A DNA stretch of 42,179 bases from Octopus sinensis. Taxonomy: Eukaryota. The stretch is from positions 1 to 42,179 of the forward strand of contig NW_021835216.1 of assembly GCF_006345805.1 (NCBI RefSeq), written 5' to 3'. The notes beneath the pieces are model-generated. The model saw only the letters and a list, made by a program, of their open reading frames with translations. It had not been told where the DNA came from and searched no databases. The position numbers and the translations under genes were made by a program. Positions 10,658-42,179 of the stretch are shown here, one piece after another. Positions within the stretch are counted from its first letter, which is position 1, and each line of letters opens with the position of its first letter.

Positions 10658-10794
10658 TGTTTGTGTGTGTGTTGTGTGTGTACGTAACTATGTATGTAGA
10701 TAGGTACTTATGTATGTATCTTTCTTTCTTTCTACGTATGTGTGTGTATCTCTCTCTCCCTCTCTATCTTTCTATGTCTCTCCCTCCATCTTAC

Positions 10795-11081
10795 TACATA
10801 CATACATGCATGCATACATACATACAGACAGACAGACATATGTACATACGCACACACACATACATACAGACAGACATATATACATACATGCACACATATA
10901 CATACATGCATACATACATACATACATGCATACATACATACATACATACATACATACATACATGCATACATACATACATACATGCATGCATACATACATA
11001 CATACATACATACATACATACATGCATACATACATACATACATACATACATACATACATACATACATACATACATACATAC
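10795..11081 (+). repeat. (ACAT)n microsatellite with GCAT variants
   Basis: Directly visible. Confidence 0.95.
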
Positions 11082-11459
11082 GAGAGAAAAAAACAAAAGG
11101 AAAAGATGAGCTTCTTGCTGTAAAAACACGTTATTTACGTAAGGGGTAAAATACTGATGAGAGAGACACGAACGCCATTAAGCCTTTTAATTTTCCCCTC
11201 TCATCCTCGCATATAGAATAACATTTATTGTCTTGGTTGTCCTTAATTAATTAATCAATATCATAAACGTTAACCTGATTAGTTTGATATCTATTTATTT
11301 ATTTTTGACTCAGTAGCATTTCTTAATGAATCTTGTCTCAACACGTTTCATTAAAAATTAAACAGGATTTGGACATTATGGATTCTGTGTAAGTGGGGCA
11401 TTTTACTTTCTAAAAATGCATTTCCAATAACATCTTTACCTTGAATAAGATGAAAATAT

Positions 11460-12639: not shown

Positions 12640-13146
<507 letters not shown>

Positions 13147-13229
13147 ATATATATATATATGTGATCGACTAACTCCTCCCCAAAAATTGTTGGCCTTGTT
13201 GCAAAATTTGGAATCACTATATATATATA

Positions 13230-13445
13230 GTGATTTCAAATTTTGCAACAAGGCCAACAATTTTGGGGGAGGGTTTAGTCGATCATAACGACACCCCACC
13301 TCCAGCGTTTTCACTGGTACTTAATCTACCGACCTCGAAAGGATGAAAAACAAAGTCGACCTCAGTGGAATTTGAACTCGGAACGGGCAAAATGCCACTA
13401 AACATTTATATCCGGCATGCTAACGATTCCGCAAGCTCGCTGCTT
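13230..13445 (-). mobile_element. Family C SINE whose tail is duplicated in inverted orientation at 13162-13217
   Basis: The core GTCGACCTCAGTGGAATTTGAACTC is present; the palindrome is described under findings. Confidence 0.75.
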
Positions 13446-13764
13446 TGGATAAGATGAAAATTTTAATGATTGGTAATTTACTTCGTTGGCTCCGTGGTTA
13501 GGGCATTCAGCTCACGATCGTAAGGTTTTGAGTTCGATTCCTGGCGGTGCGAGCTTGTAACGTTCTGTGTCACGCTGAATCTCCCTGAGAACTACCGATG
13601 GAGCGCTAGTTACTTTGTTGGCTGCAAATAACGCTGTGGTCAGCTTTACTTCTCATCGTTGCTGGGTCGATAAATTAAAGTATCAGGTACCAGAGTCGAT
13701 GTAATGGACTTACCCTCCCCTAAATTTGCTGGCCTTGTTCCTAGTGCCAAAGTTTGAGAGCCTT

Positions 13765-13876: not shown

Positions 13877-16800
13877 CATTCTATGTTTGACTTTTGCTTT
13901 ATGTCTGTATAAGTTGGCTCCAAGTCTCACCCAGAGACCTCAAGAGACAACAGGTTGGAAGTTCTGTGCCATATATTTGGGGTTTTTTTTGGGGGGGGGG
14001 CGGTTTGGTGTTGTACTAGTGAATGTCTAATACATAAATAAAATAAAAAAAAAAATAAAATAAAATAAAAAATAAAAATAAAAAAGTTTGTTTTAAACCT
14101 TGGGATTACATAGAGAGTATTTTGCGTAGGATATGAGCAGTTCCCATGAGCACTATCTTTTGAATTTCTGCCATTCCGGCGTTTCCTGGTATCTGAGATA
14201 GGTAGCAATCAGCCCCTTTTGCTATCATTCTCAGGGCACCTATGACAACAGGTATTGTTTTAGTCTTCAGCTTCCACATTTTGCTGATTTCTATTTCAAG
14301 ATCTTTATATTTGCTCAGTTTTTGGTAGGTCTTGACAGATACGTTTATATCGATTGGGACAGTCATATCAATGAGGAGGCATGTTCTTTGTCTGAAGTCT
14401 TTCAATATGATGTCTGGCCTATTTGCATCTATCTTCCTGTCAGTTTGAATGGTGAAGTTCCAGAGGAGTGAGATGTGGTCATTTTCAAGCACTGGAGGTG
14501 GATCGTGTTCCCACCAGTTTTTTTCATGGGGCAAATCCAGGTTTTTGCAAATTACCCAGTGAATATATTGTGCAGTTCTATCATGCCTACTGAGGTACTC
14601 TGTAGGGACTAGAAGACTGCATTTGGAGACAACATGATCAATGGTTTCATTTTGTTGTCGGCATACATGACATGTTGGGGTACTGCCATTCTTTAATATG
14701 TTGGCCAGGTAGTTTCCTGTTGGTAGGTATTGATCTTGAGCTGCTATGATAAACCCCTCTGTTTCAGATTTTAAGCCAGAGGCCATTAGCCATTGATGGG
14801 TCAGGGCTTTGTCGATATCTGCATTATTCGCTCTTTTTGGGTATTTGCCATAGAGAGGTTTTTCTTGCCATTTATTATTCAGAATATCTAAGGCCGCAGT
14901 TTTGGCACGGGTTTTCATGCGCCTAGCTTTTTCTGTGCTTGTTTCTTGTATGTCTATCTCTAATTCCGAATTGGTTGTATTCGGAATTCACTTAGATATT
15001 CCTTTGCCTGTTTTGTGACTGAGTATGATGCTTTCTTGTTTTCATGTTTTGAGACAAGTTTTAACATCCAGTCCTCAGAGTTTTTCAGGTAGGTGTCTAG
15101 GCCAATTGTAGCAATCTTCATTATTATTGCCAGTTGCAAAAGACCACGGCCTCCCTCTTTTCTTGGCAGATAGAGTCGTTCTGTATCTGCCTTAGGGTGG
15201 TGCATTCTATGCATTGTCAACAGTTTCCTTATTTTCTGTCGAGCTGACATATTTCAGTAATTGACCAGTTAACAATATTGAACTGTAAGTCACGACTGGT
15301 ATGGCTAATGCATTGATCGCTTCGATCCTGTTTCTTGCATTCAGCTCTGTCTTGAGTATTGCTCTCACTCTTCGATAGCATTCTCTCCTGATCCTTTCCT
15401 TCATCTCTGAATGCCTTATTCCGTTCCCTTCAATTACCCCTAGGTACTTGTAGCTCTCCGCTGGTCTAGTTCTTTTATGACATTCTGTGGTCAAGGTTAA
15501 CGTTAGATGTTCTGTCATTTTTCCTTTGATAAAGGTAGCTTTTGCACATTTATCGAAGCCGAATTGCATTCTGATGTCGTCACTGAATTGTTTGACTATC
15601 GCTAGTAAGCCTTGAGTTGTTGGTCTTTTTTGCAAAAAACTTTAAATCATCCATGTAAATGAGATGATTATATTTTTATCAAATATTTTATACCGTACTG
15701 CGCGTCACTGAGCAGCTTTGAGAGAGGTATTAAGGATAAACAAAAGAGGAGTGGTGACAGTGAGTCACCCTGGAAAATGCCACACGAAATTTTTACATCA
15801 CCAGCATTTAGGGATTCATTGTCACTGTTCAGAGTTAGTATGGTTCTCCATGATCTCATACTTACAGTCAAGAAGTTTCGCAGAGTAGGTGCTATCTTAT
15901 ACATTTCCAGGCATTTCCTAATCCAGCTATGTGCTAGGCTATTGATAAGTTTTTGTGTCGTTTGTGACAATCTTCTAAGATCATCTTATTGATGAGTAGT
16001 TGGTCTTTACAGCCGTAGGATCCACGTTTACATCCTTTCTGTTCATTAGGGAATATGCTGCTGTCTGTTAAAAAACTATAGGTATATTCCGTCAGGACAG
16101 ATGTTAGTGTTTTGTACATAGTGTTAAGCAGGTTATGGGTCTATAGTTTTTTGGTTCATTTGTTTCTTCACTTTTTGGAAGCAGGAGGAATGTTAACCCA
16201 TTAACTAGCCAAGGAGGCATCCTACTAGGGTGTTGCAAAACATCATTGTACAGTTCTGTTAGCAGTTCATGGCTCTCTGGGAAGGCATTCAGCCAGAAGT
16301 TAGGAGACTTTCCTGGAGACTTCCATTTGCTTGACCTCCTGAGAGCAGATCTTATATCTTCTACCTTGACACCCTCCCACTTTTGCTCTTCTAAGGGGTC
16401 CAGTTCTGTAGATATTCTGTCAATCCAGGGGGCCTTTTCGTTGTGTGTTTTTTTCTTCTGCCCAGGTTTTATTCCAAAATCCCTGCACGTCTTCTTTTGA
16501 TGGTACAGACCTTGCAGTAAACGCTGTTTTTCCTATCTTGCTGTAAAAATTCTTGGTATTATTTTTGAACATGTTGTTGTCCTTGAAAAATCTAACACGC
16601 TTTTCATACCTCGCTATGCGGGCAGCTTTGGCAGATACCTTTTGTTTGATGGTTTCTATGGTGGCATCAATATCAAGTATAGTTTTTTTTTCATATTGTT
16701 TTCAGTAATTTTTGGGTTTTTGTAGGTTTGGTAGTCTTGTGAGCCTTAAGGTTTTTCAAATATTCAATGTCAGATCTAAATATTTAATTTGTTGTTGCAG

Positions 16801-17812
16801 ACGCTCTTGCCAAGAAGGCTTTTTGTGGGAATGTTGCCGTTTCTAATCTTTACACCACATAGGATCGTTGAGATTTTCGCGGATGCATAGTATAGGTGGT
16901 TGAGGTTGTGATATCAACATCATTAGCTGAAATTATATCCTTAAGTGCAAGCCGGATTTTACCAATTATTTTCATGTTTTGGTTAGAGTTGCGGATTTTA
17001 GGAAGGAGTGTCACGTTCATCCATGCTGGTTTCTTTATTTTCAGCCATTCATCATGATTGATTTTTTTTTTTAGCTCATGTAGTTCTGTTGGGTCAATAT
17101 TTGTGTGACTTTCTTTATCTATTTGATGCTCATCTGTCTTAGTGTTTATGATTGGTTCAGGGAGTATTTCACTTTGCCTATCACTTATACTAACTCTTTC
17201 AATCCTCACTTCGTTTTTATCAGCCCTGGGCTGGTCTATAATTATTTCCTCTGTATTATCTTCTCTAGCTGCAACTTCGTTCATTTTATCCGATATTGCT
17301 TGTCTAACCTGATCAATCTCTACTTCAGTCAGTAATTTTCTTTTTATAATGTTTCTTCTGACGTTGGCAAGTTTGTTACTGTCTATGTAGGGTCTTACTT
17401 CAGGGTGTTTCTGTCTCCAGTTTAAGTATGCTTGTACAGTGCTAGATTTATGTGGGGAAATATATGGCATGGTAGAAGGCCTCAAGAACTTCTTTATTAT
17501 CTTCCCTAGACCATTTCTCCTTCTTTTTCTTTTGATTATTTGGTGATGAGCATGGATGGCCATCTGTTGGAATATTCCGGTTGTGGGGTACGTCCAGCTC
17601 CTGTGTGTTGGGAAGATTTGATCCAGTAGCTGATTTTTCAATCAGAATTTGGTTCAATTTTCGGGTACGTGGTCTTTTGTAATCCGCGCAACGACCAATG
17701 CGGTTTATAGTTTGATTTGTTGACCTTGAAGCATGACGAGCATCCATTCTTATATTAGGAGATGGATCTGTCCGTTTAGGGTTCTCTACATGTAAGCATT
17801 GCTCATAGCCCA
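13877..17812 (-). mobile_element. Near-full-length, inactivated Dong/R4-clade non-LTR retrotransposon (single ORF: N-terminal domain, RT, CCHC, restriction-like endonuclease)
   Basis: Fragments across frameshifts are KWSREDNKEVLEAFY (N-terminus), WKSPG, PKNYRPITCL, EQKGCKRGSYGCKDQLLINK, GIFQGDSLSPLLF, YMDD (15646-15657), YKYLGV, CHVC..ETIDHVVSKC (CCHC), RHD, RPDIIL..LLIDMTVP and KYKDL. It has many stops and frameshifts, and a deletion plus stop near 15934 removes the DYKKAFD RT motif. (AAT)n lies on both sides. Confidence 0.92.
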
Positions 17813-17828
17813 ATTATTATTATTATTA

Positions 17829-19317: not shown

Positions 19318-19562
19318 GGATATATTTAGCACTAGGTTGGACCTGCTGAAGAAAGTCAAACCTTGTGAGTTCTCCATGACTCGCTAAAAGATGATCAGAA
19401 ACCAATTGGTCCAGCAAACTAGATGGTAAATGTTTTTCCTTTCCAGATTTATTCCTGTCGAATTTTATCCCTAATTTTTTTGTGGTCAGAGAACTTAGCT
19501 GTTCTTTCTAATCCCTATAAGTGGATTCTCTATGTGTTTAAATATACACTCTATCGTATGAC

Positions 19563-19632
<70 letters not shown>

Positions 19633-20980: not shown

Positions 20981-21169
20981 GTCCCGGGTTGAGTCGGGGT
21001 TAACCACAGTAAATAAGGTACTCAATACATTGCAGAGTAAATTAATTTATTTTATAGAAGGAGCTTCTACAGGACTAGAACTGTTTCATGATTTCATTTG
21101 AATGAAACTGTACTAGTCCTGTAGAAGCTCCTTCTATAGAATAAATATATATATATACTCACACACACA

Positions 21170-21560
21170 CACATGCATAAATGGGTTACAAGACGTCACC
21201 GATGGTGCAAATAACATGAAATACGTAAACAACAAGAAAAAATGCAGAACAGAACAAGTAAACACAGTTGTCGGCTGTCGATTTACTCCTCATTTCGAGC
21301 ATTCAACGACGATATGAGTCTTCAAAGACAGATGCTCCCATAAATTCTAAAGTAAAGTTTTGGATTTAAGGAGGGTCAAAGTTGGGAACAAAAAACGACA
21401 AAGGAGACATACAAGAAAATCGAACGAAAACAAACAGGGAGGGTCGTTAGACCAGAACAAGAGGAAGAGAGAGAAGGGGAGAGAGAGAGAGGGAGGGAGA
21501 GAGAGAGGAAAGAGATGGAACATCTGTGGACCAAGGCCTGGACAGTATGAGTCATTTTAT
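21170..21560 (+). mobile_element. Penelope-type non-coding repeat fragment
   Basis: Homologous to 27030-27400 (ACTCC.CATTTCGAGC; GGATTT..GGAGGGTCAAAG.TGG.AACAAAAA). Confidence 0.5.
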
Positions 21561-24360: not shown

Positions 24361-24373
24361 ACCACAGTGAGAT

Positions 24374-24491
24374 GCTTACAGGACCTAGGTTTGCCAAGCG
24401 GTCACCCATCAAAGCTCTAATTAGGTTCAACGTTGCTTAGCTTCGGTGATCGGACGAGAACCGGTGCATTCAACGTGATATGACCGTAAGC
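24374..24491 (-). pseudogene. Full-length (118 nt) 5S rRNA pseudogene
   Basis: The minus strand reads GCTTACGGTCATATCACGTTGAATGCACCGGTTCTCGTCCGATCACCGAAGCTAAGCAACG...GATGGGTGACCGC...TGTAAGC, with complementary termini GCTTAC/GTAAGC. Box C is altered (AGAGCTTTGATGG) and there is no oligo-T terminator. Confidence 0.88.
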
Positions 24492-27600: not shown

Positions 27601-27775
27601 AGGAATAGAGATAGTGATGGAATAATGTCACAGCAGAATTATAACATGATTTTGTAATTCATGTTCTACGTTTCTTGACGTCCTATACCCATGTATGCAT
27701 GTGTATATAGTTATATATGTAAATACGTACATATATGTATGTAAATACATGTATGCATATATACATACATACATG

Positions 27776-27933
27776 GAGTGGCTGTGTGGTAAGTAGCTTG
27801 CTTACCAACCATATGATTCTGGGTTCATTCCAACTGAGTGGCATCTTGGGCAAGTGTCTTCTACTATAGCCTCGGACCAATCAAAGCCTTGTGAGTGGAT
27901 TTGGGAGACGGAAACTGAAAGAAGCCCGTCGTA

Positions 27934-27975
<42 letters not shown>

Positions 27976-28200
27976 TGTGTGTGTATATGTTTGTGTGTCT
28001 GTATTTGTCCCATCCAACATCACTTGAGAACCGATGCTGGTGTTTTTACGTCCCCGTAACTTAGCGGTTCGGCAAAAGAGACCGATAGAATAAGTACTAG
28101 GCTTCCAAAGATAAGTCCCGGGATTGAATTGCTCGACTAAAGGCGGTGCTCCAGCATGGCCGCAGTCAAATGACTGAAACAAGTAAAATAGTAAAAGAGT
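27776..28200 (+). mobile_element. SINE family B, full length
   Basis: Matches 12744-13146. Confidence 0.9.
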
Positions 28201-28593
28201 AGAGAGTATATAAATACAAACTTCGATGTTTAAATTTTATCGACTACCGCTATTTTGCCTTTAATCTTTCATTTTTTTAAAATTTAGCATTCATTTTGTT
28301 GTTTACTATTCAATTATTGCATGTTTGATGTATTTCTTATTTTATAGTTTATATGAAATTGTTTCTCAACCGTGTCTCATATACAGGTTTATTTTTTATC
28401 CCTCACCAGTTTTATTCGGCACGTTTAAACTGGCATAACAGATCGCCTGAAACAAGCAGAGAACACAAAGTTTAAAGATAATGAAAGATAAAATATAAAC
28501 ACTGAAAGCATTTATAAAGCCAAACAACAAGAAAAACAGAAAGAAAAAGAAGAAGAAATAAACGACAGAATCACTGCAAAATTCCAATGCAAA

Positions 28594-28779
28594 ATGGGTG
28601 ATACTGCGGCTGGAAATCTCTATGGAATTTCTGAAACAGTGAAAATACTTAGCCTGTATGCTGTTGTTTTAGTTCTCCCCCTGTTGTTACCGAGAGCCAG
28701 CGCGGACTCGAATCTACGTGAAGTTAGTGTTCACACGAGGATGGCAAATGCAAACAGAAATCCGCGGCTTTTACAAAGG
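28594..28779 (+). CDS. First coding exon of an unidentified secreted or membrane glycoprotein gene (exon probably 28410-28779 including 5' UTR): MGDTAAGNLYGISETVKILSLYAVVLVLPLLLPRASADS...NPRLLQR
   Basis: ATG in a CAAAATGG context with an in-frame stop upstream. Hydrophobic stretch ILSLYAVVLVLPLLL followed by an A-S-A|D cleavage-like site. Donor AGG|GTAAGT (phase 0) and upstream acceptor TTTTTTATCCCTCACCAG at 28409. Confidence 0.7.
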
Positions 28780-28834
28780 GTAAGTTTGTTATGTGTTGTT
28801 TTTGTTGTTGTTGTTATTACATACTAGATAAAAG

Positions 28835-29670
28835 CAGCAAGTTGGCAGATTTTGTTAGCATGCCACAGAAAATACTTATTGGTATTTCTTCCGAGCTGGC
28901 AGAAACGTTGGCACACCAGGCGAAATGCGTAGCCGTATTTCGTCTGCCGTTAAGTTCTGAGTTCAAATTCCGCCGAGGTCGACTTTGCCTTTCATCCTTT
29001 CGGGGTCGATAAATTAAGTACCAGTTACGCACTGGGGTCGATATAATCGACTTAATCCGTTTGTCTGTCCTTGTTCGTCCTCTCTGTGCTTAGCCCTTTG
29101 TGGGTAGTAAAGAAATAGGTATTTCTTCCGTCTTTAACGTTCAGAGTTCAAATTCCACCGAGGTCGATTTTTGTCGTTTATCATTTTGGGATCGATGTAA
29201 TAAGTACCCGTTGTGCTCCGGGAGTCGATGAAATCGACCTACTACTCCCTCGAAATTGCTGGCATTGTGCCAACATTTTAAACCGTTATTTCTGGATGGT
29301 GGCAATGAGTTTCACGAGGTATGGAGTCGTTGGAACACCAATAATGTCGTCCATGTTTTTGTTATTTGTTTATTTTTGAGTTCAAATTTCGGTGAGATCG
29401 CCTTCGTCATTCATCATTCCAGGGTCGATAGAATAAATACCAGCGTAGCACTGGTATCGATATAATCGACATATTCCTTACCATTAACAAAATGCGTGCC
29501 TTGTGTCAAAATTTGAATTTAATCAAGAGGCAAAACGGCAGAACATTTAGCGAGTCGGACAACATGCTTAGCAGCATTTATTCTGACTTTTTACATACTG
29601 TGTTAAAATTCCACCAAGTTAGACTGTGCCATTCATTCTTTAAGAATCGATAAAATAGGTATGAATTAAG
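28835..29670 (+). mobile_element. Cluster of tandem family C SINEs (long- and short-tail variants)
   Basis: At least four copies of the GTTCAAATT.C..CGAGGTCGA core. Confidence 0.8.
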
Positions 29671-30334
29671 CACCGATGATATATTATATATTATATATAT
29701 ATTATATTATATATATTATATATATATATCTATATATGTGTGTGTGTGTGTGTGTGGTGTGTGTGTATGTGTGTGTGTGGTGTGTGTGTGTGTTGTGTGT
29801 GCTTGGGTGTGTGTGTGAGTGTATGTATGTATGTATGTATAACTCTCTATATAGAATTCTTTGTCTCTATGTCTCTCTGCCTGTCTGCGATTCATCAAAC
29901 TATCGATAAAATCTTCTAACGGTTCGCCAAAGAAGTTCGATAAAATAACATACCGGTTCTCTCGGACTCTCCGTCGCTTTCTCTTACTCTCTATCTTTCT
30001 CTATCTATCTTTCTCCCATTTATAAAGAATTAGATTACCGCGCTTATATTACAAATCCGCTTCCACTTTACCATGTTGAAAATTAGATTGAAATCCGGCA
30101 AAAGGTCTCCAATCTAGACCTCCAAGTGTCCACACAAATCAATAAAATCCCGTTTTCACTCCAAAGTAACCACTGTAGCACCCCAAAACGTCTCCCAATC
30201 AATTTCTCACCTCAAGTTACCCCCTCCTGTAAATTTTAATCCCCTTCCAACCCCATTTAGACCCCTTTTTACATAAAAATCCAATTAGTATCAACGTTCG
30301 CCTTCTTCATTTTATAGATTAGACATATATAGGG

Positions 30335-30487
30335 CCTGCTTCTTTCAGTTTCTGTCTACCAAATCCACTCACAAGACTTTGGTCGACCCGAAGCTATGGT
30401 AGAAGACACTTGCCTAAGGTGCCACGCAGTGGGACTGAACCCGGAACGATGTGGTTTGTAAGCAAGCTACTTACCACTCAGCCACAC
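30335..30487 (-). mobile_element. SINE family B, 5' part
   Basis: Reverse complement of the family B head. Confidence 0.85.
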
Positions 30488-30506
30488 AGCCAGTCTGTCC
30501 ACCTAT

Positions 30507-30508
30507 TC

Positions 30509-30572
<64 letters not shown>

Positions 30573-30589
30573 GGCTGTCTGTTTGTCTG

Positions 30590-30652
<63 letters not shown>

Positions 30653-30656
30653 CTCC

Positions 30657-30748
<92 letters not shown>
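30507..30748 (+). repeat. (TCTA)n microsatellite
   Basis: Directly visible. Confidence 0.95.
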
Positions 30749-30749
<1 letters not shown>

Positions 30750-30842
30750 GTAGGCTTTTCTTCCCACGGATGAACCTAATCTTGTTTCTCACTGTTAAAA
30801 AAATTTTGATCCCTTTTGATCGCTTTTCTTTTCCCGATCCCT

Positions 30843-30954
30843 TTTGATCGGAATTTTACATTTGTCTCCATTTTTGTTTCCTTTTTTCTTTTTCCATCTT
30901 TGATCGGAATTTTACATTTGTCTCCATTTTTGTTTCCTTTTTTCTTTTTCCATC
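30843..30954 (+). repeat. Exact 56-bp pyrimidine-rich tandem duplication
   Basis: TTTGATCGGAATTTTACATTTGTCTCCATTTTTGTTTCCTTTTTTCTTTTTCCATC occurs twice. Confidence 0.9.
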
Positions 30955-31099
30955 TTCGAAAAGAAAATCTCTACATTTGTATTTGTTCCCTCTGTATTTC
31001 AGCCCTGTGTGGCCAATAAAGAAAGTTATCTATCTATCTAGCTAGCTAGCTAGCTAGCTACTAGCTAGCTATCAAACTTTCTTCTTTCAAATTTTTCAG

Positions 31100-31249
31100 G
31101 AGTCATTGTGGGTGTCAGAAGCGGCGGTTGACGGAAATGGAAAGCTTGAAAAGAAGGAAATGCTGACAGACATTCGAATAGTCATTATGCTCCATGAAAG
31201 TATAAACAATTCAAACCGTTTGTATGCAACGTTTAATGAAACGATAACG
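31100..31249 (+). CDS. Second coding exon (phase 0-0): ESLWVSEAAVDGNGKLEKKEMLTDIRIVIMLHESINNSNRLYATFNETIT
   Basis: Acceptor CTTCTTTCAAATTTTTCAG and donor ACG|GTAAAT. It is 150 nt, and only frame 0 is open, matching the upstream phase-0 donor. Confidence 0.75.
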
Positions 31250-31309
31250 GTAAATTTGAAAAATTTTCCATCCTCAAAAATCTTAATTTTTTTTGACTAC
31301 TTTTTGTGC

Positions 31310-31865
31310 GGTGGCAAGAATCGTTAGCATATTGGCCAAAAATGTTTGGCGAAATTTCATCCGTCTTTATGTTCTGAGTTCAAGTTTCAAAGAGGTCGAC
31401 GTTTCCTTTCATCTTTTCGTGTCAATGAAACAAGTACCAGTTGAGCACTGGGGGTGTTTTAATTGATTTACCCCATCACCCGAAACTGCTGGCTTGTGCC
31501 AAAATTTAAAATTATTATTATCTATTTGTCAAACTCCGCGGTCTACTTTGCCTTTATCCTTTCGGGGTCGATGAAATAAGTACCAGTTACGCACTGGGGT
31601 CGATATAATCGACTTAATCCGTTTGTCTGTCCTTGTTCGTCCCCTCTGTGTTTAGCACCTTGTGGACAGTAAAGAAATAGGTATTTCGTCTGAAGTTACG
31701 TTCTGAGTTCAAATTCCGCCAAGGTCGACTTTGCCTTTCATCCTTACGGGGTCGATAAAATAAGTACCAGTTACGCACTGGGGTCGATGTAATCGACTTA
31801 ATCCGTTTGTCTGCCCTTGTTTGTCCCCTCTATGTTTAGCCCCCTGTGGGCAATAAAGAAAAAAA
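31310..31865 (+). mobile_element. Cluster of tandem family C SINEs
   Basis: Repeated core and long tail CTTAATCCGTTTGTCTG.CCTTG. Confidence 0.8.
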
Positions 31866-32306
31866 AATATTTTGTAACGTGTAGTTAAAATTGTTTTATT
31901 TACTAAAAATTTTTTTTACAAATCTAAAGAAAATAGGTAAATAAATTAAATGTTTGACTATAGTAAAATTTAAGCCTATTGAAGTAATTAAACGTTTTCT
32001 TTGTTTAATTTTTGGCAAAATTATTTTACTTTCAAAATTTTAATTTTTAGTTAGTTAACTATTTCTATTTGTCGGTTCATTTTACTGTTAGGTAAGTCAA
32101 AGTTCCCCTCAAATAAAATAAATGCAGGCTTGATATAGTTAATCACAATGAAAAAAGAAATAAAGATCATCTTTAAGATATTGTATTAATAATAAATAAA
32201 CAAAAATGAATCTGTATTTCAAAAATCTTAAAACAATTTTTATTTTATACATGGGAATTCATGAGAAAATATCAAATTATATTTATCGAATGATATATTT
32301 ATCTGC

Positions 32307-32582
32307 GTAGAGGTGCAATGGCCCAGTGGTTAGGGCAGCAGACTCGCAGTCGTAGGATCGCGGTTTCGTTGTGAGTGTTTATTGAGCGAAAACACCAAAA
32401 AGCTCCACGAGGCTCTGGCAGAGGACGATGGCGATCCCTGCTGTACTCTTTCGCCACAACTTTCTCTCACTCTTTCTTCTGTTGGCCGGCTCGCTTAGCC
32501 AGAGGGGTGGCGTCATTTGAAGGCTAAAACAATGCGAAGCGCATTGTGACCAGCGATGTATAGCTGGTCGGTCACGGTGATA
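32307..32582 (+). mobile_element. SINE family D
   Basis: Head GTAGAGGTGCAATGGCCCAGTGGTTAGGGCAGC, homologous to 1634-1830. TATCTGC appears on both flanks as a possible TSD. Confidence 0.8.
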
Positions 32583-32879
32583 CCTATCTGCAGTATTTTA
32601 AGCTCTTTTTCTTTTATTTTAGGCTTACTTCTTCTCCTGTATATTTCCAAGTTTATTAAATATTGTTATTCCTTGCTCGCATCTTTCATCTCAGTATATG
32701 TATGGAGCATTGGCGTATTCTACTTTGTTTTGTTCATGATAACCACACACACACACACACACACAAAATATGTATAAATATATATATTCATATATAAAAT
32801 ACACAAACATATACAAAGAAAACAGAAAATGGATACATTTATCCCTTAGACGGTTATTTTACGTCTAACTCAACTAACC

Positions 32880-32939
<60 letters not shown>

Positions 32940-32976
32940 ATCTATCTATCTCTATCTCTCTCTCCTCTCTCTCTCT

Positions 32977-33018
<42 letters not shown>

Positions 33019-33064
33019 TATATACCATTTTCAATATATACATATACATATATATTATACACAT

Positions 33065-33103
<39 letters not shown>

Positions 33104-33111
33104 CATATATT

Positions 33112-34153
33112 ATGTGGCGCTTTCAGACATGCCTTCAGTTGCTACGATGGCCACCCTGCTAGCTATGCAGATGACACAAAAGTCTCCACACATACAAAGC
33201 CCTGAAAATATTGCGCATCTGCAACAGGAGTGGATACAATATACAGGTGGGCTGAGGACAACAACATGCAGTTTAATGCAGGTAAGTTCCAGGCCCTGCG
33301 CACCGGCCACAAAGGTAAACGACGTGCAGACTGGATAAACTGGCCCAGGAAGAATTGCAATCCCTGAGTCAAAATCATGCGTTGACATGGGCATTGACAT
33401 GAGCAATGATGCATCTTTCCAAGTGCATATTACTAATCTGGTGATAAAATGCAGACGGCTAGCTGGATGGATTCTCCGAACTTTCAGAACAAGAGTGAAG
33501 GGACACTGATGGGCCTCTGGAAAACATTCGTCCTCAGCCGTTGGACTACTGCCCAACTATGGTCACCACAATATAAAACAAGCAGCAGAACTCGAAGCAA
33601 TTCAAAGAAGCTACACAAAGAAGATCGTCTCAATGCAAAATATCAGCTATTGGGAAAGACTGAAAGTATTAAACCTCTTCTCCCTAGAGCGGAGGCGGGA
33701 GAGATATGCGGTGATATACATCTGGAAAATCCTGGAGGGTCTTGTCCCAAACTTTGGCATTCAAAGTTACTCCAACCGTAGAACGGGGCGCCACTGCATG
33801 GTGCCAAAGATTCCAACATCACCATCAAAATACAGGACCAGATACTGCAACAGCTTGGGTTTCAGAGGACCACAGCTCTTTAACATCCTCCCTAAATGCC
33901 TGATAGACTTACATGTTGTGGATGTGGGTTTCTTTAAAACTAAACTGGATCTCTTCTTGTCGGGGGTCCCAGATGAACCTATATCACGACAGGAGACACA
34001 GATGCGGGCAGCAGCATCGACTCCCTTGTTGATCAAGTGCCACGTATCAGAGGTGGATTCACATATTAGTGTAGCTCATTCAGCGGTGGTGCCCAGCTGG
34101 CCCGCGGCCTTCGGGCTAAAACATTTTTAAAGATTTAAGGATTTAAGGATTTA
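33112..34153 (+). mobile_element. 5'-truncated, frameshifted CR1/L2-group LINE (RT C-terminal half plus 3' end)
   Basis: YADD at 33164-33175 (SYADDTKVS), then WAEDNNMQFNAGKF, LWKTFVLSR.DY and ERLKVLNLFSLERRRERYAVIYIWKILEGL. It ends in a (GATTTAAG)n octamer tail and is flanked by (TA)n. Confidence 0.88.
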
Positions 34154-34156
34154 TAT

Positions 34157-34211
<55 letters not shown>

Positions 34212-34218
34212 AGATATG

Positions 34219-34362
34219 AGGCAAATAGAAGAGGGCAAGGACATGCAATCGACAAGCATCGGCCGGTGAATATTCAATTATATCTATTTATAAATATATA
34301 TAATTGAATGTTTGCTGGCTGATGTTTGCCGATTGGGTATCCTCTCTATTTTCTTATTTGCC
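34219..34362 (+). other. Imperfect long hairpin; the inner 37-bp stem (34246-34335) is mostly closed by G-U wobble on the plus strand
   Basis: CAATCGACAAGCATCGGCCGGTGAATATTCAATTATA pairs with TATAATTGAATGTTTGCTGGCTGATGTTTGCCGATTG, with 6 G-U pairs and 1 A-C mismatch. Confidence 0.75.
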
Positions 34363-34579
34363 TTATAAATCCTGGGTAAATTTCCAATCTACCCCCATCC
34401 ATACCTAGTATACATATATATATACATACACACATACATACATATATATGACCATTCTGAAATATAACAATATATATATATATCAATAAATGGTAGGGTT
34501 GTGTTGACCGCACGTGGAGAAATGATAAGCAAGGAAAAATTGTAAAAATGCAGAATGCTAAATTGAAAGAAAATTTTAA

Positions 34580-34657
<78 letters not shown>

Positions 34658-34837
34658 TACATATATCTATACATATATACATACATATATATATATGTAT
34701 GTATGTATGTATATATATGTTGTGTTATGATGTGTATGTATGTATGTATGGATGTGTGTGTATATATATATGTGTGTATGTATGTAGTATGGAGTATGTA
34801 TGTATGTATGTATGTATGTATGTGTGTGTATATAATA

Positions 34838-34879
<42 letters not shown>

Positions 34880-35031
34880 CACATCTGTGTGTGTCTTAGT
34901 ATCTGTGTTTGCATATGCACAAAGCCTCTTCATGTGTGTGTGTGTGTGTGTGCGCGCGCATGTGTCTGTGTGTCCATACATAAGCTTTGTCACTGGAATA
35001 TCGAAGCTAATTTGGAAATTTGACCTTTCAG

Positions 35032-35227
35032 ATAGATAAGAGGTCCCGTGTAATGCCAAGAATTCGAATTCAAATCGAGGCAGAGTTTGAAAACATTTCT
35101 ACTATGCAAATGGAGAACGTGCTTGTCCACAACAAATTCAGACCTGGTCTCAGAATTATCCCTGAACCAAATCCACTTCCGATGGTTAACGATTACCAGT
35201 TTATATGGAACTTCAGCGACGTACAAA
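35032..35227 (+). CDS. Third coding exon (phase 0-1): IDKRSRVMPRIRIQIEAEFENISTMQMENVLVHNKFRPGLRIIPEPNPLPMVNDYQFIWNFSDVQ
   Basis: Branch-like GCTAAT, acceptor TTTGACCTTTCAG and donor AAA|GTAAGT. Only frame 0 is open from the acceptor, matching exon 2. Confidence 0.75.
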
Positions 35228-35559
35228 GTAAGTTACATAAATATTAGTGAAGTACTTTGGTATACTAAAACGACACCATTACGTCAAATAGGTCTATGGT
35301 GAGATTATGCTTCAATGGTGATGAGACAGGTATAAGACCGAAACATGACCAAAGATGTCTCTGGTACCGGACAAGAAAATTAAAATCTCACCCATCATTG
35401 ATAAATTTGCATTTAATATAAATTTGTGAAGGTAAATTTGTATATTTTACCTTCTAACTTTATTTGTTTCAGTAAAAGGTGCGGGTACAAAAACAGATAA
35501 AAAGACAGACAGACAGATTGACAGACACACACACACGCGCACACGTATATAAACGACAG

Positions 35560-35708
35560 CCTCCACACAGTTCCCGTCAACCAAATTAACTCGCAAGGCA
35601 TTTATTGGCTTGGTGTTATAGCAGAAGACAGTTGCCCAAGGTGCCGCGCAATGGGATTGAACCTGAAACCAGTTAGTTGCAAAGCGACCTTCTTAAACAC
35701 ACAGTCAT
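35560..35708 (-). mobile_element. Degenerate SINE family B head
   Basis: AGAAGACAGTTGCCCAAGGTGCCGCGCAATGGGATTGAACC resembles the family B head. Confidence 0.7.
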
Positions 35709-36280
35709 AACTACACTAGTGTTCCATGTCAATAAACGAATAAGTATGATTAATAACTAGGTAAGCATGTGACTATGGGATAAAGACAGCGTCCATGATC
35801 CTTCATTGAGGGTCCAAGGTTGTTAGAAAGGAAAGAAGGAGGAAAGTTTCACTATTCTCAAAGTGGAGACTTGGCCCAATAGCTTACAGAAGGAATTCTG
35901 CTAAAGCTATCAAAGGTACTAGGTACTGATGTGAACACGGGCGATGGATTTCCTCTAGTATCGCAGACAGCCACAGCAGTATTTCAACTGAGGACGCAGA
36001 AATGGAAGAAACAGCATAAATAGATCTAATCTGGTGTTCTGAGAGTTTCGTCAATCTACTTGGATTTTTTCAGTGTTTTATCGACTCCGATAGCATACAT
36101 ACATACATAATACATACATACATACATGCATACATACATACATACATACATACATAAAATACTACGTACCGTACGTACGTACGCCACATACATAACATAC
36201 ATACATTCATACGTACGTACGTTACGTACTACATTACATACACATATACATACATACATACATACATAAAACATACATAT

Positions 36281-36461
36281 GATGGCTGCCCCCTCGTTAT
36301 CGAGTATGGCCATTGCACGAAGCTTAACAGTTATTGGTGCTGTGATCGAATGTGACTTTTTAGCCCAGCTAAAGATCCACAATGTCTTGTACAGAATTGG
36401 CAGCTAAAACTAAAACCGGCAACCCCACCAAACTTGCTTGGTGAGGAGGGTGTTTATTGGA
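36281..36461. mobile_element. Rearranged family G copy embedded in (ACAT)n
   Basis: 36282-36327 matches 9192-9237 directly; 36413-36461 matches 9619-9667 inverted. Confidence 0.7.
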
Positions 36462-36515
36462 CGTACACACATACATACATGCATACATGCATGCATGCAT
36501 GCATGCATACATATA

Positions 36516-36549
<34 letters not shown>

Positions 36550-37050
36550 CATACATACATACATATATACATACATACGTACATGCATACACATATAATA
36601 TTCTTTTATTAAGATGGCGCATTATGTCGGCTACGTTGGATGTAATCACTAGGACAGCTTGATATATTAGGGGTTAAAGATTATTAGCTGGGTGACCAAC
36701 TTTGGACATTAAGGGAAAATTAGCTAAGCAACTTTTATGTATGTTTCAAGTTACGTAACAAACATTGTTTTGGTTATGAAACATATGTAGTCTTTATTTA
36801 CCCTTTCCATTCCTTACATTTTTGAATTTTTATTCACACTTTTAGCAGCTTCAGTTGCAAAACCATGAATTTTATGGTGACTGACAGTTTATCGAAATTT
36901 CCTTTTATTTCAGTATGGGACGAAACGTGTAACTTTCAACGGTTAATAAAACATTTTGTCACCTACATTAGCTGTATACATGATAGACACTCTCTAAATT
37001 CCTACATTAGGAACTTTACATCGTACTAACCTATTACTACATGTATTCAT

Positions 37051-37320
37051 ATGTGGTTGTGTGGTAAGAAGCTTGTCTCCCGATAACATGGTTCCGTGTT
37101 CAGTCCCACTGTGTGGTATGTTAGGCAAATGTCTTCTACTATAGTCTCAGGTCGACAAAAGCTTTGTGAGAGGATTTGGATTAACTAGAACCTGTCGTAT
37201 ATGTGTGTGTTGTGTGTGTGCGCGCGCGCGCGCGAGCGTGTGTGAGTCTGCGCCTGTTCCCCGTCACCATTTTTGTGTTTACGTTCCAGTATCTTAGCGG
37301 TTCGGCAAAAGACACAATTT
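37051..37320 (+). mobile_element. Degenerate SINE family B
   Basis: GTGGTTGTGTGGTAAGAAGCTTG...TTCAGTCCCACTG...TTAGCGGTTCGGCAAAAGA. Confidence 0.75.
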
Positions 37321-38014
37321 GAATAAGAACTTTTTAACTTGGTTCCATGAAACAAATTACTTGGGCGAATTGGCACAAAAAGATTAGTGATATTTATAAC
37401 TAATTATGCTAGTTTCTATACTTTGTAAAGTATATTTACATTCTGGGTTCGAATCCTGCTAGGTCGGCTACTAATTCTTTTTAACTTGGTACCATGGAAT
37501 AAATTTGGTGGGTGAGTTGGCACAAAATACTTAGTCATATTTCTGACTAAATACGCCAGAAGTTCAAATTCCGCCGTGGTCAACTGGGCCTTTTAATCCT
37601 TGGAGTGGAAATAGAAAGAATATCAGACTCATACTGGGGGTCGATGCAGTTGACTTGTTCCCCGCCTTTCCCATTTAAAATTTTTATCCTTGAATTCTGC
37701 AACGGACAAGGGTCTCGTATAAGGGAATTGTTGTGAATACAGCCATTTATATGCTGTGGGAAACCGGGTAACAAGATTTAAGAGTTCTGGGGCTGAACAA
37801 ATATTTATAAAAAAATGAAAAAAATCTACCAATCCAATATTGAGGTCCTGTGCTAATCAGCATTGCTAATATAATGATCCTTATTTTTTTAAAATTTTCA
37901 ATTAAAATATACCACTACCACCACCAACGCTACTACTACTATGGTTACCTCTACGTGCATGGTGCCAACAACCACAACTACCACAACAACAACAACAACA
38001 AAAACGACATACAG

Positions 38015-38109
38015 ATATCAGTATGGATTATACAGCAGAACCTAACAGAGGAGCAAGGGATACTTTCTTCACCGATTTCACCATAATTGAATCTTCGAAT
38101 AATTTGCCT
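38015..38109 (+). CDS. Candidate further exon (phase 1-0): (N)ISMDYTAEPNRGARDTFFTDFTIIESSNNLP
   Basis: Strong donor CCT|GTGAGT and an open frame compatible with the phase-1 end of exon 3. The acceptor CATACAG lacks a polypyrimidine tract. Confidence 0.3.
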
Positions 38110-38213
38110 GTGAGTTATCAAAAGTTATTTTTTTTCTATTCTTCTTTCACAAAACTTTTTTCCAATTAATATTAGCAATCCATTCTTACTTCACAGCTAA
38201 CGAAATTATTGTG

Positions 38214-38271
<58 letters not shown>

Positions 38272-38712
38272 TATATAGATAATACAATATATATATATAC
38301 AATTAGAAAACCCCCACCTTTTATCAATTCAAACTGAACATTAAATTACACCATCTGGAAAATTACATATAATAGAAATATTAAAAATTTTATACATATA
38401 TATAATATAGATAGTATGTGGTGTGTATGTATGTATGTATGTATATAATATTATATGTATACATACATATATAAATATATTATATATATATATATAATAT
38501 AATATTATATATATTATATTATATTGTGTGAAATTTGATTTAGTATCTCTAATGAATTTTTTTCCTTGTAAGTTTGGATCTTATTCCCTCAAATAATAAT
38601 CATATTATCTATATATATATATATATAGTATATAGTGTGTGTGTGTGTGTGTGTGTGTGTTTATGTCCGGTGTTTGTAACATTAAACGATTGAATATAAT
38701 CAATAGTATGTA

Positions 38713-39037
38713 GGAGCACTCTGTCGGTTACGACGACGAGGGTCCCAGCAGATACGATCAATGAAACAGCCTGCTCGTGAAATTAACGTGCAAGTGACTG
38801 AGCGATCCACAGACACGCGTACCCCTAACGTAGTTCTCAGGGTGGCTCAGCGTGACACAGAGTGTGACAAGGCCAGCCCTTTGAAATACAGGTACAACTA
38901 ATTTTTGCCAGCTGATTGGACTGAAGCAACGTGAAATAAAGTGTCTTGCTCAAGGACACAACGCATCACCGGGAATCGAACTCACGACCTTACCATCGTG
39001 AGCCGAATGCCCTAACCACTAAGCCACGCGCCTTCAC
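38713..39037 (-). mobile_element. SINE family E with a 9-bp TSD
   Basis: TAGTATGTA at 38704-38712 and 39044-39052. Homologous to 2120-2447. Confidence 0.85.
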
Positions 39038-39240
39038 AATCAGTAGTATGTATCGCTGAAACAAATGGCACCAGTAGACTGGTGGAATAAGGTAATATAA
39101 AATGGAAAGGGGTCAAACTGTTTTTAGGCTGTCTGCATCGCCGTCAGTGCTCACATACTAAGAGGTGGTAACCTTGTGGTTATACAATCGAGATTTAACC
39201 GTAATCCCTTCGGGTTTCTTTCTTGGGTTACAGAGTAAAC

Positions 39241-39594
39241 GTGGCCGCTCTGTTGGCAGTGTGCACCAATGAAGACCAGAAATCAGTGACCTAATTTCAC
39301 TGGTCTGAAGGCATTTCCGAGGATAAAATTTGTCGCAGGTATCAGTATCGTGCGGGTACAGCGTTGTACCACGTAGAAGTGTGTGTGAGAGAATAGAGAT
39401 GTTTTAAAATGCTCAGACAGGCGTGATGCAAGGAGGGCGATTCATTTTCCTCGAGATATTGTACTGGCAAATTGAATAGTGACCATCGCTGTGGGTGCAT
39501 GTTCTGTACAAAATTTGTCATGACTCTGCATACGAAAGCATCCACGACAAGCTCCGCTTTCCGTAAAGCTAGTGTATGTTGGGACCCAAGAGAA
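39241..39594 (+). mobile_element. Mariner transposase relic, N-terminal HTH region through the WVP motif
   Basis: Across stops and frameshifts it reads AALLAVCTNEDQKSVT*FHWSEGISEDKICRR/..SVVPRRSVCERIEMF and HDSAYESIHDKLRF/RKASVCWDPRE. This matches the mariner pattern CTKEEQRSVIRFLWSEG...IHDRLGFRKVCARWVP. Confidence 0.8.
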
Positions 39595-39704
39595 ATTATC
39601 GAAGCGTATAGGAGATTTATCTCTATAAATATAACAGTAAATTGAAAAATTTAGGAAAAAAATGAATACAAAGATAACTCAGCAGAGTTTATTGGAAAAC
39701 ATAA

Positions 39705-40110
39705 GCAGGAGTGGCTGTGTGGTAAGTAGCTTGCTTACCAACCACATGGTTCCGGGTTCAGTCCCACTGCGTGGCACTTTGGGCAATTGTCTTCTACTAT
39801 AGCCTCGGGTCGACCAAAGCCTTGAAGTAAAATATTATATTTAAACAATTGTTTAAACCTCGCCAAGATAAATATTTAAACCACCTGATGAATGACTGTG
39901 ACATGAAAATTTAAAGAAATTACAGCCATGAAACGATCGTAGTGATATATATAATTATATTTTTTAATAATTTTGTTATATATTTTAAATAATATACATT
40001 AAATAATCTCATGTATTGGCTTAAGTTTTTCATTGTATGATTTGCCTAATAGTGTTTTGTCTCTAATTAATATAATATAATATATATTTATATATATATA
40101 TATATATATA

Positions 40111-40152
<42 letters not shown>

Positions 40153-40370
40153 TGTGTGTGTGTGTGTGTCTGTGTGTCGTGTTTGTCCCCCTAGCATTGC
40201 TTGACAACCGATGCTGGCGTGTTTACGTCCCCGTAACTTTGCGGTTCGGCAAACGAGACCTATAGAATAAGTACTGGGCTTACAAAGAATAAGTTCCGGG
40301 GTCGATTTGCTCGACTAAAGGCGGTGCTCCAGCATGACCGCAGTCAAATGACTTGAAACAAGTAAAAGAG
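39705..40370 (+). mobile_element. SINE family B split by an AT-rich insert of about 250 bp (about 39824-40075)
   Basis: Head at 39705-39823 and tail at about 40150-40370. The central GTGGATTTGGTAGACGGAAACTGAAAG block is missing. Confidence 0.85.
39882..39944 (+). ncRNA. Type I hammerhead ribozyme with an intact catalytic core
   Basis: CAC-CTGATGA-ATGACTGTGA-(18-nt loop)-TTACAGCCAT-GAAA-C-GATC-G-T-A-GTG. Stem I is CAC/GTG, stem II is 10 bp with one mismatch, stem III is AC/GT capped by palindromic GATC, and the GUA cleavage triplet is at 39939-39941. Confidence 0.7.
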
Positions 40371-40494
40371 GGAAAAAAAACAAATGAACTTTTAATAGCA
40401 ACATCAGAGCCCTTCCACGTGGGCCCCATTGGTTATATGTAATACATTTAGACGATACTCAATTCCTGGCCACGTGTGTTGGCGGATCCCTTAT

Positions 40495-40739
40495 TCAATG
40501 TTGGATACGGCTTAGCTTATTTTTTCCCCTCGAGGCCATTGAGGTTTCGAACTCTTGCTCGATTGGTTCTGTTTTAATGTGGCTCCATAAGAAGAAGAAA
40601 TCTAGAGGGATTACTTCTGTTGACATAGGTGGCCAGGGATCTGAGGCACCTCTTCCTATCCAACGGTTTGGGAAAGATTTCATTAAGAAACTCCCGGGCG
40701 CTTTAACCCCAAATGAGGTGGCGCACCATTTTGTTGGAA
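40495..40739 (-). mobile_element. Tc1/mariner-superfamily transposase relic, catalytic region
   Basis: FQQNGAPPH../REFLNEIFP/NRWIGRGASDPWPPMSTEVIPLDFFFLWSHIK matches the QQDGAPPH...RWIGR...WPPRSPDLTPLDFFLWG signature. Confidence 0.85.
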
Positions 40740-40788
40740 AATAACTTTAGTTTATTCAATATGCAAAGAAGTCAGTTAACGAATTTCA

Positions 40789-41165
40789 TCTCTCTCTATA
40801 TAAACGGCAAAATGTCTGTCTGTGTGTGCGTGTGCGTATCCTTTATACAAATCCACAATTTTTCAGTTAGAGGGCTCGCACTTTCCATGGTCATTCAAAA
40901 CCGTCCAAGGGTGGTCGTGCACATTTTTACATTTCCCCAGTCACGCAGCAAAGCCACTAAAAAAATCAATAGAAGTGACTATTTTGTGAATTTTCTATCC
41001 AAAACCCAATCAAAATGCCCGAAACTTGATACGCCAATTGAATGCCAGCTAGCTGTATGTGATTGGTCGGAGATTTGGACAGTATTTGCGTGTATGTGCG
41101 CACGCACGCAGCTGTATATGCATGCACTAGCACCATGACCCGGCGTTGCCGAGTCATTGTGCTAG
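40789..41165 (+). mobile_element. Putative non-autonomous Helitron-type element
   Basis: 5' A|TC..CTATATAAAC, internal (TG)n, and a 3' hairpin GACCCGGC-GTT-GCCGAGTC followed by CTAG. The next base is G, not the expected T. Confidence 0.55.
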
Positions 41166-41339
41166 GTTTTGATAAATACAATCAGTTATTTTATGGACAC
41201 CTTGTAGAAAACATAATATGAAAATAAAAGAAAATATATTGCAGACGCTCGTACGTTTCTGATACTTCTTCATAGCTTATGCATAGAAGAAAAAAAATGT
41301 TCTCATAGGAGTCTTGTCTACATAAATATATAAGTACAT

Positions 41340-41975
41340 CAAAGCGGTGAGCTGGCAGAAACGTTAGCACGCCGGGCGAAATGCTTAGCCGTATTTCGTC
41401 TGTCTTTACGTTCTGAGTTCAAATTCCGCCGAGGTTGACTTTGCCTTTCATCCTTTCGGGGTCGATTAAATAAGCACCAGTTACGCACTGGAGTCGATAT
41501 AATCGACTTAATCCGTTTGTCTGTCGTTGTTTGTCCCCTTTGTCTGTAACCCCTTGTGGGCAGTAAAGAAATAAGAAACGTTAGCACGCAGGGTGAAATG
41601 CTTAGCGGTATTTCGTCTGTCTTTACGTTCTGAGTTCAAATTCCGCCGAGGTCGACATTGTTTTTCATCCTTTTGGGGTCGATAAATTGAGTACCAGTTG
41701 CGTACTGGGATCGATCTAATCGACTGGCCCCTTACCCCAAAATGTCGGGCCTTGTGCCTAGAGTAGAAAATATTGGAGGCGGCGAGCTGGTAGAAACTTT
41801 AGCGGGCCGGGCGAAATGCTTAGTGGTATTTCATCTGTTTTTTACGTTCTGAGTTCAAATTCTGCCGAAGCCGATTTTGCCTTTCATTGTTTCGGGGTCG
41901 ATAAATTAAGTACCAGTTGTGTACTGGAGTCGATCTAATCAACTGGTCCCCTCCCCTTGTGCCTAGAGTAGAAAC
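41340..41975 (+). mobile_element. Three tandem family C SINEs
   Basis: Three copies of GAAATGCTTAG..GTATTTC.TCTGT.TTTACGTTCTGAGTTCAAATT. Confidence 0.9.
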
Positions 41976-41988
41976 GAATATAATAGTA

Positions 41989-42056
41989 CATCATCATCAT
42001 CATCATCTTCGTCGTCGTCGTCGTCATCATCATCATCATCATTATCATCATCGTCA
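41989..42056 (+). repeat. (ATC)n/(GTC)n microsatellite
   Basis: Directly visible. It is the source of the poly-Asp ORF. Confidence 0.95.
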
Positions 42057-42179
42057 TTTAAAATTTGTTGACTAAACTTTCTAACTAATCGAAGCTCTTC
42101 AAAAGTAATCCAATTTTTATCTTTTAACCACAGAATAAAACAAAGACGCAAATAGGCATGCTGTATTGCCTGGAAATGA

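Follow-up and report, generated by a model that had tools for sequence, protein, structure and literature searches.

We analysed a stretch of 42,179 nucleotides from Octopus sinensis (NCBI RefSeq assembly GCF_006345805.1, contig NW_021835216.1, positions 1 to 42,179 of the forward strand), hereafter called the window, which is AT-rich (about 37% GC) and crowded with microsatellites and short interspersed element (SINE)-like repeats, a composition in keeping with an octopus genome. An initial annotation, made from the letters alone, had proposed that a hidden spliced gene of three exons at 28410-35227 encodes a signal-peptide glycoprotein weakly resembling a receptor ectodomain. Our analysis indicates that five exons at the 5′ end of one octopus gene lie in the window, exons 1 to 4 in full and exon 5 in part, and that the product is a type I membrane glycoprotein with a single pass; we put the probability of this reading at roughly 0.78.

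All five exons and the introns between them lie on the + strand. Exon 1 (28594-28779, 186 nt) codes for Met1-Arg62, starts at aaaATGg and ends in phase 0 at the donor AGG/gtaagt, where the slash marks the exon border. Intron 1 (28780-31099, 2320 nt), crowded with SINE-like repeats and microsatellites, separates it from exon 2 (31100-31249, 150 nt), which runs from phase 0 to phase 0 between the acceptor tttcaaatttttcag/G and the donor ACG/gtaaat and codes for Glu63-Thr112, including the sequons NNS and NET. Following intron 2 (31250-35031, 3782 nt), which contains SINE-like repeats, a transposon-like open reading frame (ORF) at 33633-34130 and long TA/CATA microsatellites, exon 3 (35032-35227, 196 nt) codes for Ile113-Gln177 with the sequons NIS and NFS and extends from the acceptor cctttcag/A to the donor AAA/gtaagt, ending in phase 1. 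Joined, these three exons give 532 nt with phases 0/0/1 and zero stops, as read from the sequence. Exon 4 (38015-38109, 95 nt; phase 1 to 0) was placed through homology and splice sites, with the acceptor acag/AT and the donor CCT/gtgagt, and codes for NISMDYTAEPNRGARDTFFTDFTIIESSNNLP. Exon 5 (42134-42179) is cut by the window end and codes for NKTKTQIGMLYCLEM, inside which lies a single conserved juxtamembrane Cys. The two remaining introns are intron 3 (35228-38014), which is syntenic with positions 10176-11149 of the corresponding Octopus bimaculoides locus on CM046622.1 (L001), and intron 4 (38110-42133) between exons 4 and 5.

The 177-amino-acid product of exons 1-3 has the hydrophobic region ILSLYAVVLVLPLLL, the site PRASA/DS, the four sequons NNS, NET, NIS and NFS, and zero Cys. 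Its signal peptide comprises codons 1-37 (28594-28704), with cleavage predicted at ASA/DS; the hydrophobic core is 15 residues long, has a Kyte-Doolittle mean of 2.86 over its best 12 residues and is followed by ASA/D. The three exons with their GT-AG borders, phases and open frame, as well as the leader ending in ASA/D, the four sequons and the lack of Cys, were all described in the initial annotation and are all present in the sequence. The span that it gave holds for exons 1-3, and its end at 35227 does not, since exons 4 and 5 continue downstream.

Searching with the 177-amino-acid product returned a single protein among 5.8 billion (E=2.2e-21), the 'uncharacterized protein LOC106873804' of O. 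bimaculoides (XP_014776804.1, 176 amino acids; P0001). A tblastn search of P0001 against the window recovered exon 3 (81% amino-acid identity), 38014-38106 (65%) and 42134-42178 (60%), and it was through these matches and the splice sites that the downstream exons 4 and 5 were located, an extension that the initial annotation had proposed to follow. Exon 4 corresponds to P0001 residues 59-89, and the acceptors and donors of both exon 3 and exon 4 are kept in O. bimaculoides. Exons 3-5 have identical lengths and an open frame in both species. Exon 3 is certainly coding.

P0001 begins at the first ATG within exon 3 (MPRIRIQ...), yet the frame and the acceptor upstream of this ATG are kept, reading IDKRSPEM in O. 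bimaculoides and IDKRSRVM in the window. Synteny between the window and L001 is anchored at 21737-22455/4948-5666, 22920-23736/6673-7503 and 34915-35270/9867-10218, and the stretch bounded by the anchors on either side of exons 1-2 contains a run of 2181 N (L001 7505-9685) in the O. bimaculoides assembly. Because this gap covers the expected place of exons 1-2, the RefSeq model is without them, and their absence from the O. bimaculoides annotation is therefore uninformative. The same applies to blastn and tblastn searches for exons 1-2 in this locus, which gave no match, the region being a run of N. The gene was thus hidden insofar as the nearest public model lacks exons 1-2 owing to an assembly gap. 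As annotated, with sequons N-terminal to a transmembrane helix and no signal peptide, P0001 is implausible as a real protein.

To these data we add two distant homologues. When 1.84 billion protein representatives were searched exhaustively with HMMER, P0001 as query retrieved 4 proteins at E<=0.001 (P0001, P0002, P0003 and P0004), and ectodomain relatives were confined to only two clusters. P0002 (291 amino acids; E=2.8e-10) aligns at residues 117-265 with P0001 1-149; it has an N-terminal signal peptide and derives from a 1009-nt intron-less Logan contig (L002) of sequencing run SRR21372859. A BLASTP comparison of the five-exon product with P0002 gave one collinear alignment (48-222 vs 46-219, E=2e-14). 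The MAFFT alignment was collinear end to end, with M120, P121, the sequons N133-x-S135 and N178-x-S180, P150-G151-L152, W171 and C221 invariant. Positions 985-1009 of L002 are Illumina adapter (AGATCGGAAGAGCACACGTCTGAAC), and the final residues of P0002 (..QIGRAHV), translated from it, and its apparent stop are artefacts; P0002 is short because its contig ends in this adapter. Its cluster mate P0008, an uninterrupted ORF of 1263 amino acids in a 4001-nt Logan contig (L003, SRR29271480), continues further and consists of a signal peptide, a sequon-rich ectodomain of ~200 amino acids, a transmembrane helix, an E/K/Q-rich coiled-coil-type tail of ~1000 amino acids and a polybasic end. The homologue is thus transcribed in two independent sequencing runs. 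Judged by these alignments, P0002/P0008 would be a distant orthologue or paralogue of the octopus gene. A word-indexed protein search with P0008 produced 8000 candidates, was swamped by low-complexity words and gave no match, and a literature search found nothing on LOC106873804 or SRR21372859.

The other two proteins recovered with P0001 are bacterial repeat proteins of 2118 (P0003) and 931 (P0004) amino acids, which match P0001 32-77 with E=3.5e-7 and 4e-6, respectively, summed over 7-10 units of the type PxLIITGDxRPKVxGNQLVLSFSD... Repeat inflation probably accounts for these scores. The matches may point to strands of a beta-sandwich-like arrangement in the ectodomain.

P0008 also links P0001 to its neighbour in O. 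bimaculoides. The neighbouring model in L001 encodes 881 amino acids from 14407 and begins at the first in-exon ATG just past an N-run at 13102-13728. The L001 exons at 14362-14625, 17374-17586, 19470-19590 and 21085-21250 match P0008 residues 316-395, 456-526, 562-608 and 652-697, respectively, and thus lie in the same order as the P0008 residues; for each of them, 0-1 of 3000 shuffles attained the score. This collinearity suggests that LOC106873804 and its 881-amino-acid neighbour are very probably one gene, broken into two RefSeq models by assembly gaps.

Exons 1-2 were compared with what chance provides in this DNA. Open frames are common: 176 stretches of at least 150 nt on the + strand are free of stops, many of them microsatellite translations, and approximately 25 distinct donor sites have at least 120 open nt upstream. 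Splice sites were scored with a generic matrix of our own, without octopus calibration. With this matrix, no open AG..GT segment of at least 120 nt on either strand other than exon 2 reaches at least 6 bits at both sites, and the exon 1 donor scores 10.5 bits; the matrix is rough, giving low acceptor scores even to the true exons 3 and 4. On both strands (84 kb), exon 1 is the only non-microsatellite, ATG-started, phase-0, donor-bearing ORF with a signal-peptide-like core and a small-x-small site.

The mature tail of exon 1 joined to exon 2 aligns with P0002 37-116 at a score of 44, compared with 23.8 +/- 4.3 for shuffles. In 20000 shuffles this score was attained 29 times, and in 20000 randomly drawn pairs of actual six-frame window pieces 7 times, giving an empirical p of ~0.0004-0.0015 for an alignment that crosses the 28779/31100 junction. 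Exon 2 is collinear with P0002 residues ~61-110, and the N-terminal extension before the conserved MP motif measures 119 amino acids in the window model and 116 in P0002, whereas it would be 69 without exon 2. A MAFFT alignment in which exons 1 and 2 were entered as separate rows was discarded, the rows being scattered. We consider it very likely that exons 1-2 as described are the genuine start of the gene. The claim of a spliced gene for a glycoprotein of the secretory pathway was thereby supported, with exon 3 orthologous to an O. bimaculoides protein, a homologue of the same layout and an exon 1-2 alignment above chance.

After the ectodomain, P0001 continues into FTALIFFLGIFLGLTLLIFIMLLIVI, which AlphaFold models as a helix with a pLDDT of ~96. 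Because of this helix, the product is to be read as a type I membrane protein and not as a soluble protein or a short secreted or receptor-ectodomain fragment; the exons described here code for the N-terminus of such a protein. The distance from the signal-peptide cleavage to the transmembrane helix is ~190-200 residues, both in the composite of the window and P0001 and in P0002/P0008. By analogy with P0008 and the neighbouring O. bimaculoides exons, the octopus protein probably has an E/K/Q-rich coiled-coil cytoplasmic domain of ~1000 residues. AlphaFold2 gave a mean pLDDT of 52 for P0001 alone and of 39.6 for P0002 with a four-row alignment, the ectodomain being <50 in both. In these low-confidence models the ectodomain contains strands only and no alternating helices, which, together with the alternating hydrophobic pattern, weakly suggests a beta-rich rather than an alpha/beta ectodomain.

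From this architecture, the signal peptide would direct the N-terminus into the lumen of the endoplasmic reticulum, where the sequons would be glycosylated, and the transmembrane helix would anchor a protein whose coiled-coil tail may serve at the membrane as a tethered scaffold or as a rod for oligomerisation. The cleavage site, the glycosylation, the beta-rich fold and the scaffold function are inferred. More speculatively, and with low odds, the gene could be the founder of a cephalopod- or mollusc-restricted family without detectable relatives elsewhere, in which a small, fast-evolving glycosylated ectodomain coupled to the membrane-tethered rod would belong to a lineage-specific system at the cell surface. 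Recognition between gametes or between cells would be one example, and a scaffold at cilia or junctions, in the manner of EVC/EVC2, another.

Several observations weigh against the reading of exons 1-5 as the start of a gene for a type I membrane glycoprotein. The signal-peptide call comes from a heuristic of our own (hydrophobic core plus small-x-small site) and not from SignalP, and the n-region is long (17 amino acids) and slightly acidic. The splice junctions 28779/31100 and 31249/35032 are predicted. The octopus transmembrane helix and tail would follow from the O. bimaculoides locus, outside the window, and there P0001 ends in its own short terminal exon with a stop (L001 12745-12813), leaving a tail of 33 amino acids after the helix. 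With the exon 1-2 peptide alone, BLASTP gave no alignment to the homologue N-terminus. A phmmer search of the homologue against 1406 six-frame window pieces did not bring single exons to prominence, exon 2 ranking 11th and exon 1 falling outside the top 15; this test lacks power because the proven exon 4 fails too, being likewise weak in the scan (E ~8). Finally, over the 112 codons of exons 3-5, the window and O. bimaculoides differ with a synonymous divergence (dS) of 0.175 and a nonsynonymous divergence (dN) of 0.132, hence a dN/dS of 0.75.

The alternative that survives best, although we regard it as doubtful, is that the main octopus product is short, with ~295 amino acids (signal peptide, ectodomain, helix and the 33-amino-acid tail), and that the coiled-coil exons form a separate gene or a rare isoform. 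RefSeq does have two genes here, and the terminal exon of P0001 with its stop would provide the end of such a product. The 881-amino-acid model, however, also begins at an in-exon ATG after an N-run and is collinear with the P0008 tail, and the seemingly short P0002 is truncated by adapter. A short isoform ending in the P0001 terminal exon may exist beside the long product.

It is unlikely that the gene starts at the exon 3 ATG and that exons 1-2 are chance frames with chance GT-AG borders. The sole annotated orthologue begins at this ATG, open frames of at least 150 nt and usable donors are common in such repeat-rich DNA, and the BLASTP and phmmer results with exons 1 and 2 are what this alternative would predict. 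Yet the RefSeq start is forced, the model adjoining the 2181-N gap; a protein starting there would carry conserved sequons N-terminal to a transmembrane helix and no signal peptide; the frame and acceptor are conserved upstream of the ATG; and the distant homologue has a 116-amino-acid extension with a signal peptide. The junction-spanning alignment and the uniqueness of exon 1 as a signal-peptide candidate also speak for a start in exon 1.

Less probable still is a decaying gene, or one whose ectodomain is under relaxed constraint, in place of a functional gene. In addition to the dN/dS of 0.75, the coding identity of 87% between the two species is no better than that of the flanking introns (88-90%). 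Against this, the introns contain many indels, whereas the 336 aligned coding nt contain no stops, frameshifts or indels, every splice site visible in both species is intact, conservation extends to three sequons and the Cys, and the homologue is transcribed in two independent runs. A pseudogene is thus disfavoured by the intact frame and by the retention of splice sites, sequons and Cys. On this comparison, the ectodomain of the functional gene appears weakly constrained, and therefore its relatives are hard to find and a conserved ligand-binding pocket is disfavoured. Because evolution is near-neutral between two Octopus species, the ectodomain would more likely serve as a stalk or a variable module than be a clamshell conserved for ligand binding.

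The initial annotation had further likened the ectodomain to periplasmic-binding-protein type 1 (PBP1) domains, and the family searches bear on this. Using hmmscan with Pfam-A, 0 families matched the 177-amino-acid product at E<=10, ANF_receptor (PF01094), the family suggested for checking, included. For P0001, P0002 and P0008, Pfam gave nothing beyond noise and no ANF_receptor or Peripla_BP at E<=1; at E<=10 the P0008 ectodomain had no Pfam family, and neither ANF_receptor nor EVC2_like matched any of four P0008 pieces. Both P0008 and the 881-amino-acid O. bimaculoides product carry a '-' as their precomputed Pfam entry. A phmmer search of the PDB with the 177-amino-acid product found no iGluR, mGluR or natriuretic-peptide-receptor chain at E<=10, the best match being an unrelated calmodulin chain (E=0.092), and 0 PDB chains matched the four-sequence family profile at E<=10. 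A divergent PBP1-type ligand-binding ectodomain (ANF-receptor or iGluR amino-terminal domain), for which an alternating hydrophobic strand pattern (IRIVIML, RIRIQIE, LRIIPEP) is the only argument, is therefore scarcely credible and was rejected, there being no Pfam or PDB match, an ectodomain of about half the domain size, a single helix and coiled-coil tail next to it, and no alternating helices in the low-confidence models.

Upstream of exon 1, the A-rich unique sequence at 28493-28593 (+) is a probable core promoter and 5′ untranslated region, with the motifs atataaa (28493-28499) and tataaa (28513-28518); TATA-like motifs are common in AT-rich DNA. A 4-codon upstream ORF, ATGCAAAATGGGTGA (28587-28601), overlaps the main ATG in another frame; its own ATG sits in a weak context, with c at both -3 and +4, as opposed to A (-3) and G (+4) around the main ATG, and leaky scanning past the upstream ATG at 28587 is plausible.

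Short interspersed repeats of at least two families, ~150-300 bp long and with many copies in the window and in the O. bimaculoides locus, closely flank exons 1-2 at 27775-28221, 28892-29673, 30320-30485 and 31317-31798 and occur elsewhere as well, leaving small unique islands. Within intron 1, (ATCT)60 occupies 30509-30748 and (CTAG)n occupies 31030-31071, just 5′ of the exon 2 acceptor; between them lies a tandem duplication (30843-30956) of a 56-bp unit in 2.0 copies with a 100% match.

A full-length match to 5S rRNA (RF00001, 91.3 bits, model positions 1-120 of 120) lies at 24373-24491 (-), ~4 kb upstream of exon 1 and among SINE-like repeats. Its syntenic place in O. bimaculoides is within the assembly gap, and the match may represent a working 5S gene, a 5S pseudogene or a repeat derived from 5S sequence. 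Further upstream, a degraded non-long-terminal-repeat retrotransposon at 14106-17813 (-) comprises several ORFs with weak Pfam matches to zf-RVT (E=3.2e-5) and RVT_1 (E=0.0025), and it accounts for some of the window DNA lacking a unique counterpart between the O. bimaculoides syntenic blocks.

The value of these results lies chiefly in annotation: LOC106873804 is shown to be a fragment, probably split from the 881-amino-acid model, and the window supplies its likely true 5′ end in the form of the signal-peptide exon and exon 2. A tempting but wrong annotation as a PBP1/iGluR-like receptor is removed, and the list of cephalopod orphan genes gains an entry for a lineage-restricted type I membrane coiled-coil protein without a Pfam or PDB relative. 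It is an ordinary lineage-restricted gene, and no open biological question hinges on it.

Compared with known systems, the product shares with the PBP1/ANF_receptor ectodomains of iGluR, mGluR and natriuretic peptide receptors (NPR) an extracellular position after a signal peptide, N-glycosylation (here as sequons) and short hydrophobic strand-like runs. A bilobed PBP1 domain has about 350-400 residues, however, which is twice the size of the ectodomain described here; the octopus ectodomain has no conserved disulphide pattern, and no channel, cyclase or seven-transmembrane domain follows. The sole analogues in overall layout that we can point to are EVC2/limbin and EVC, proteins of cilia that cross the membrane once, with a short extracellular N-terminus and an extended coiled-coil region in the cytoplasm. 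A relationship with EVC2/limbin was rejected, EVC2_like (PF12297) giving no match to P0008 at E<=1 or to its four pieces at E<=10; a short ectodomain, one helix and a coiled-coil cytoplasmic region of ~1000 amino acids may match in layout, and in layout only. The ectodomain identity with P0002/P0008 is only ~24%, yet the octopus product has in common with them the signal peptide, ~115 amino acids before the MP motif, two sequons, the PGL motif, the W and the juxtamembrane Cys, with the helix coming next in P0001, P0002 and P0008. The closest counterpart is LOC106873804 with the 881-amino-acid model: the public LOC106873804 model lacks exons 1-2, takes an internal ATG as its start and is cut off from the coiled-coil 3′ part, whereas the underlying locus is orthologous and syntenic, has the same splice sites and the same sequons, and in P0001 places a transmembrane helix directly after the ectodomain.

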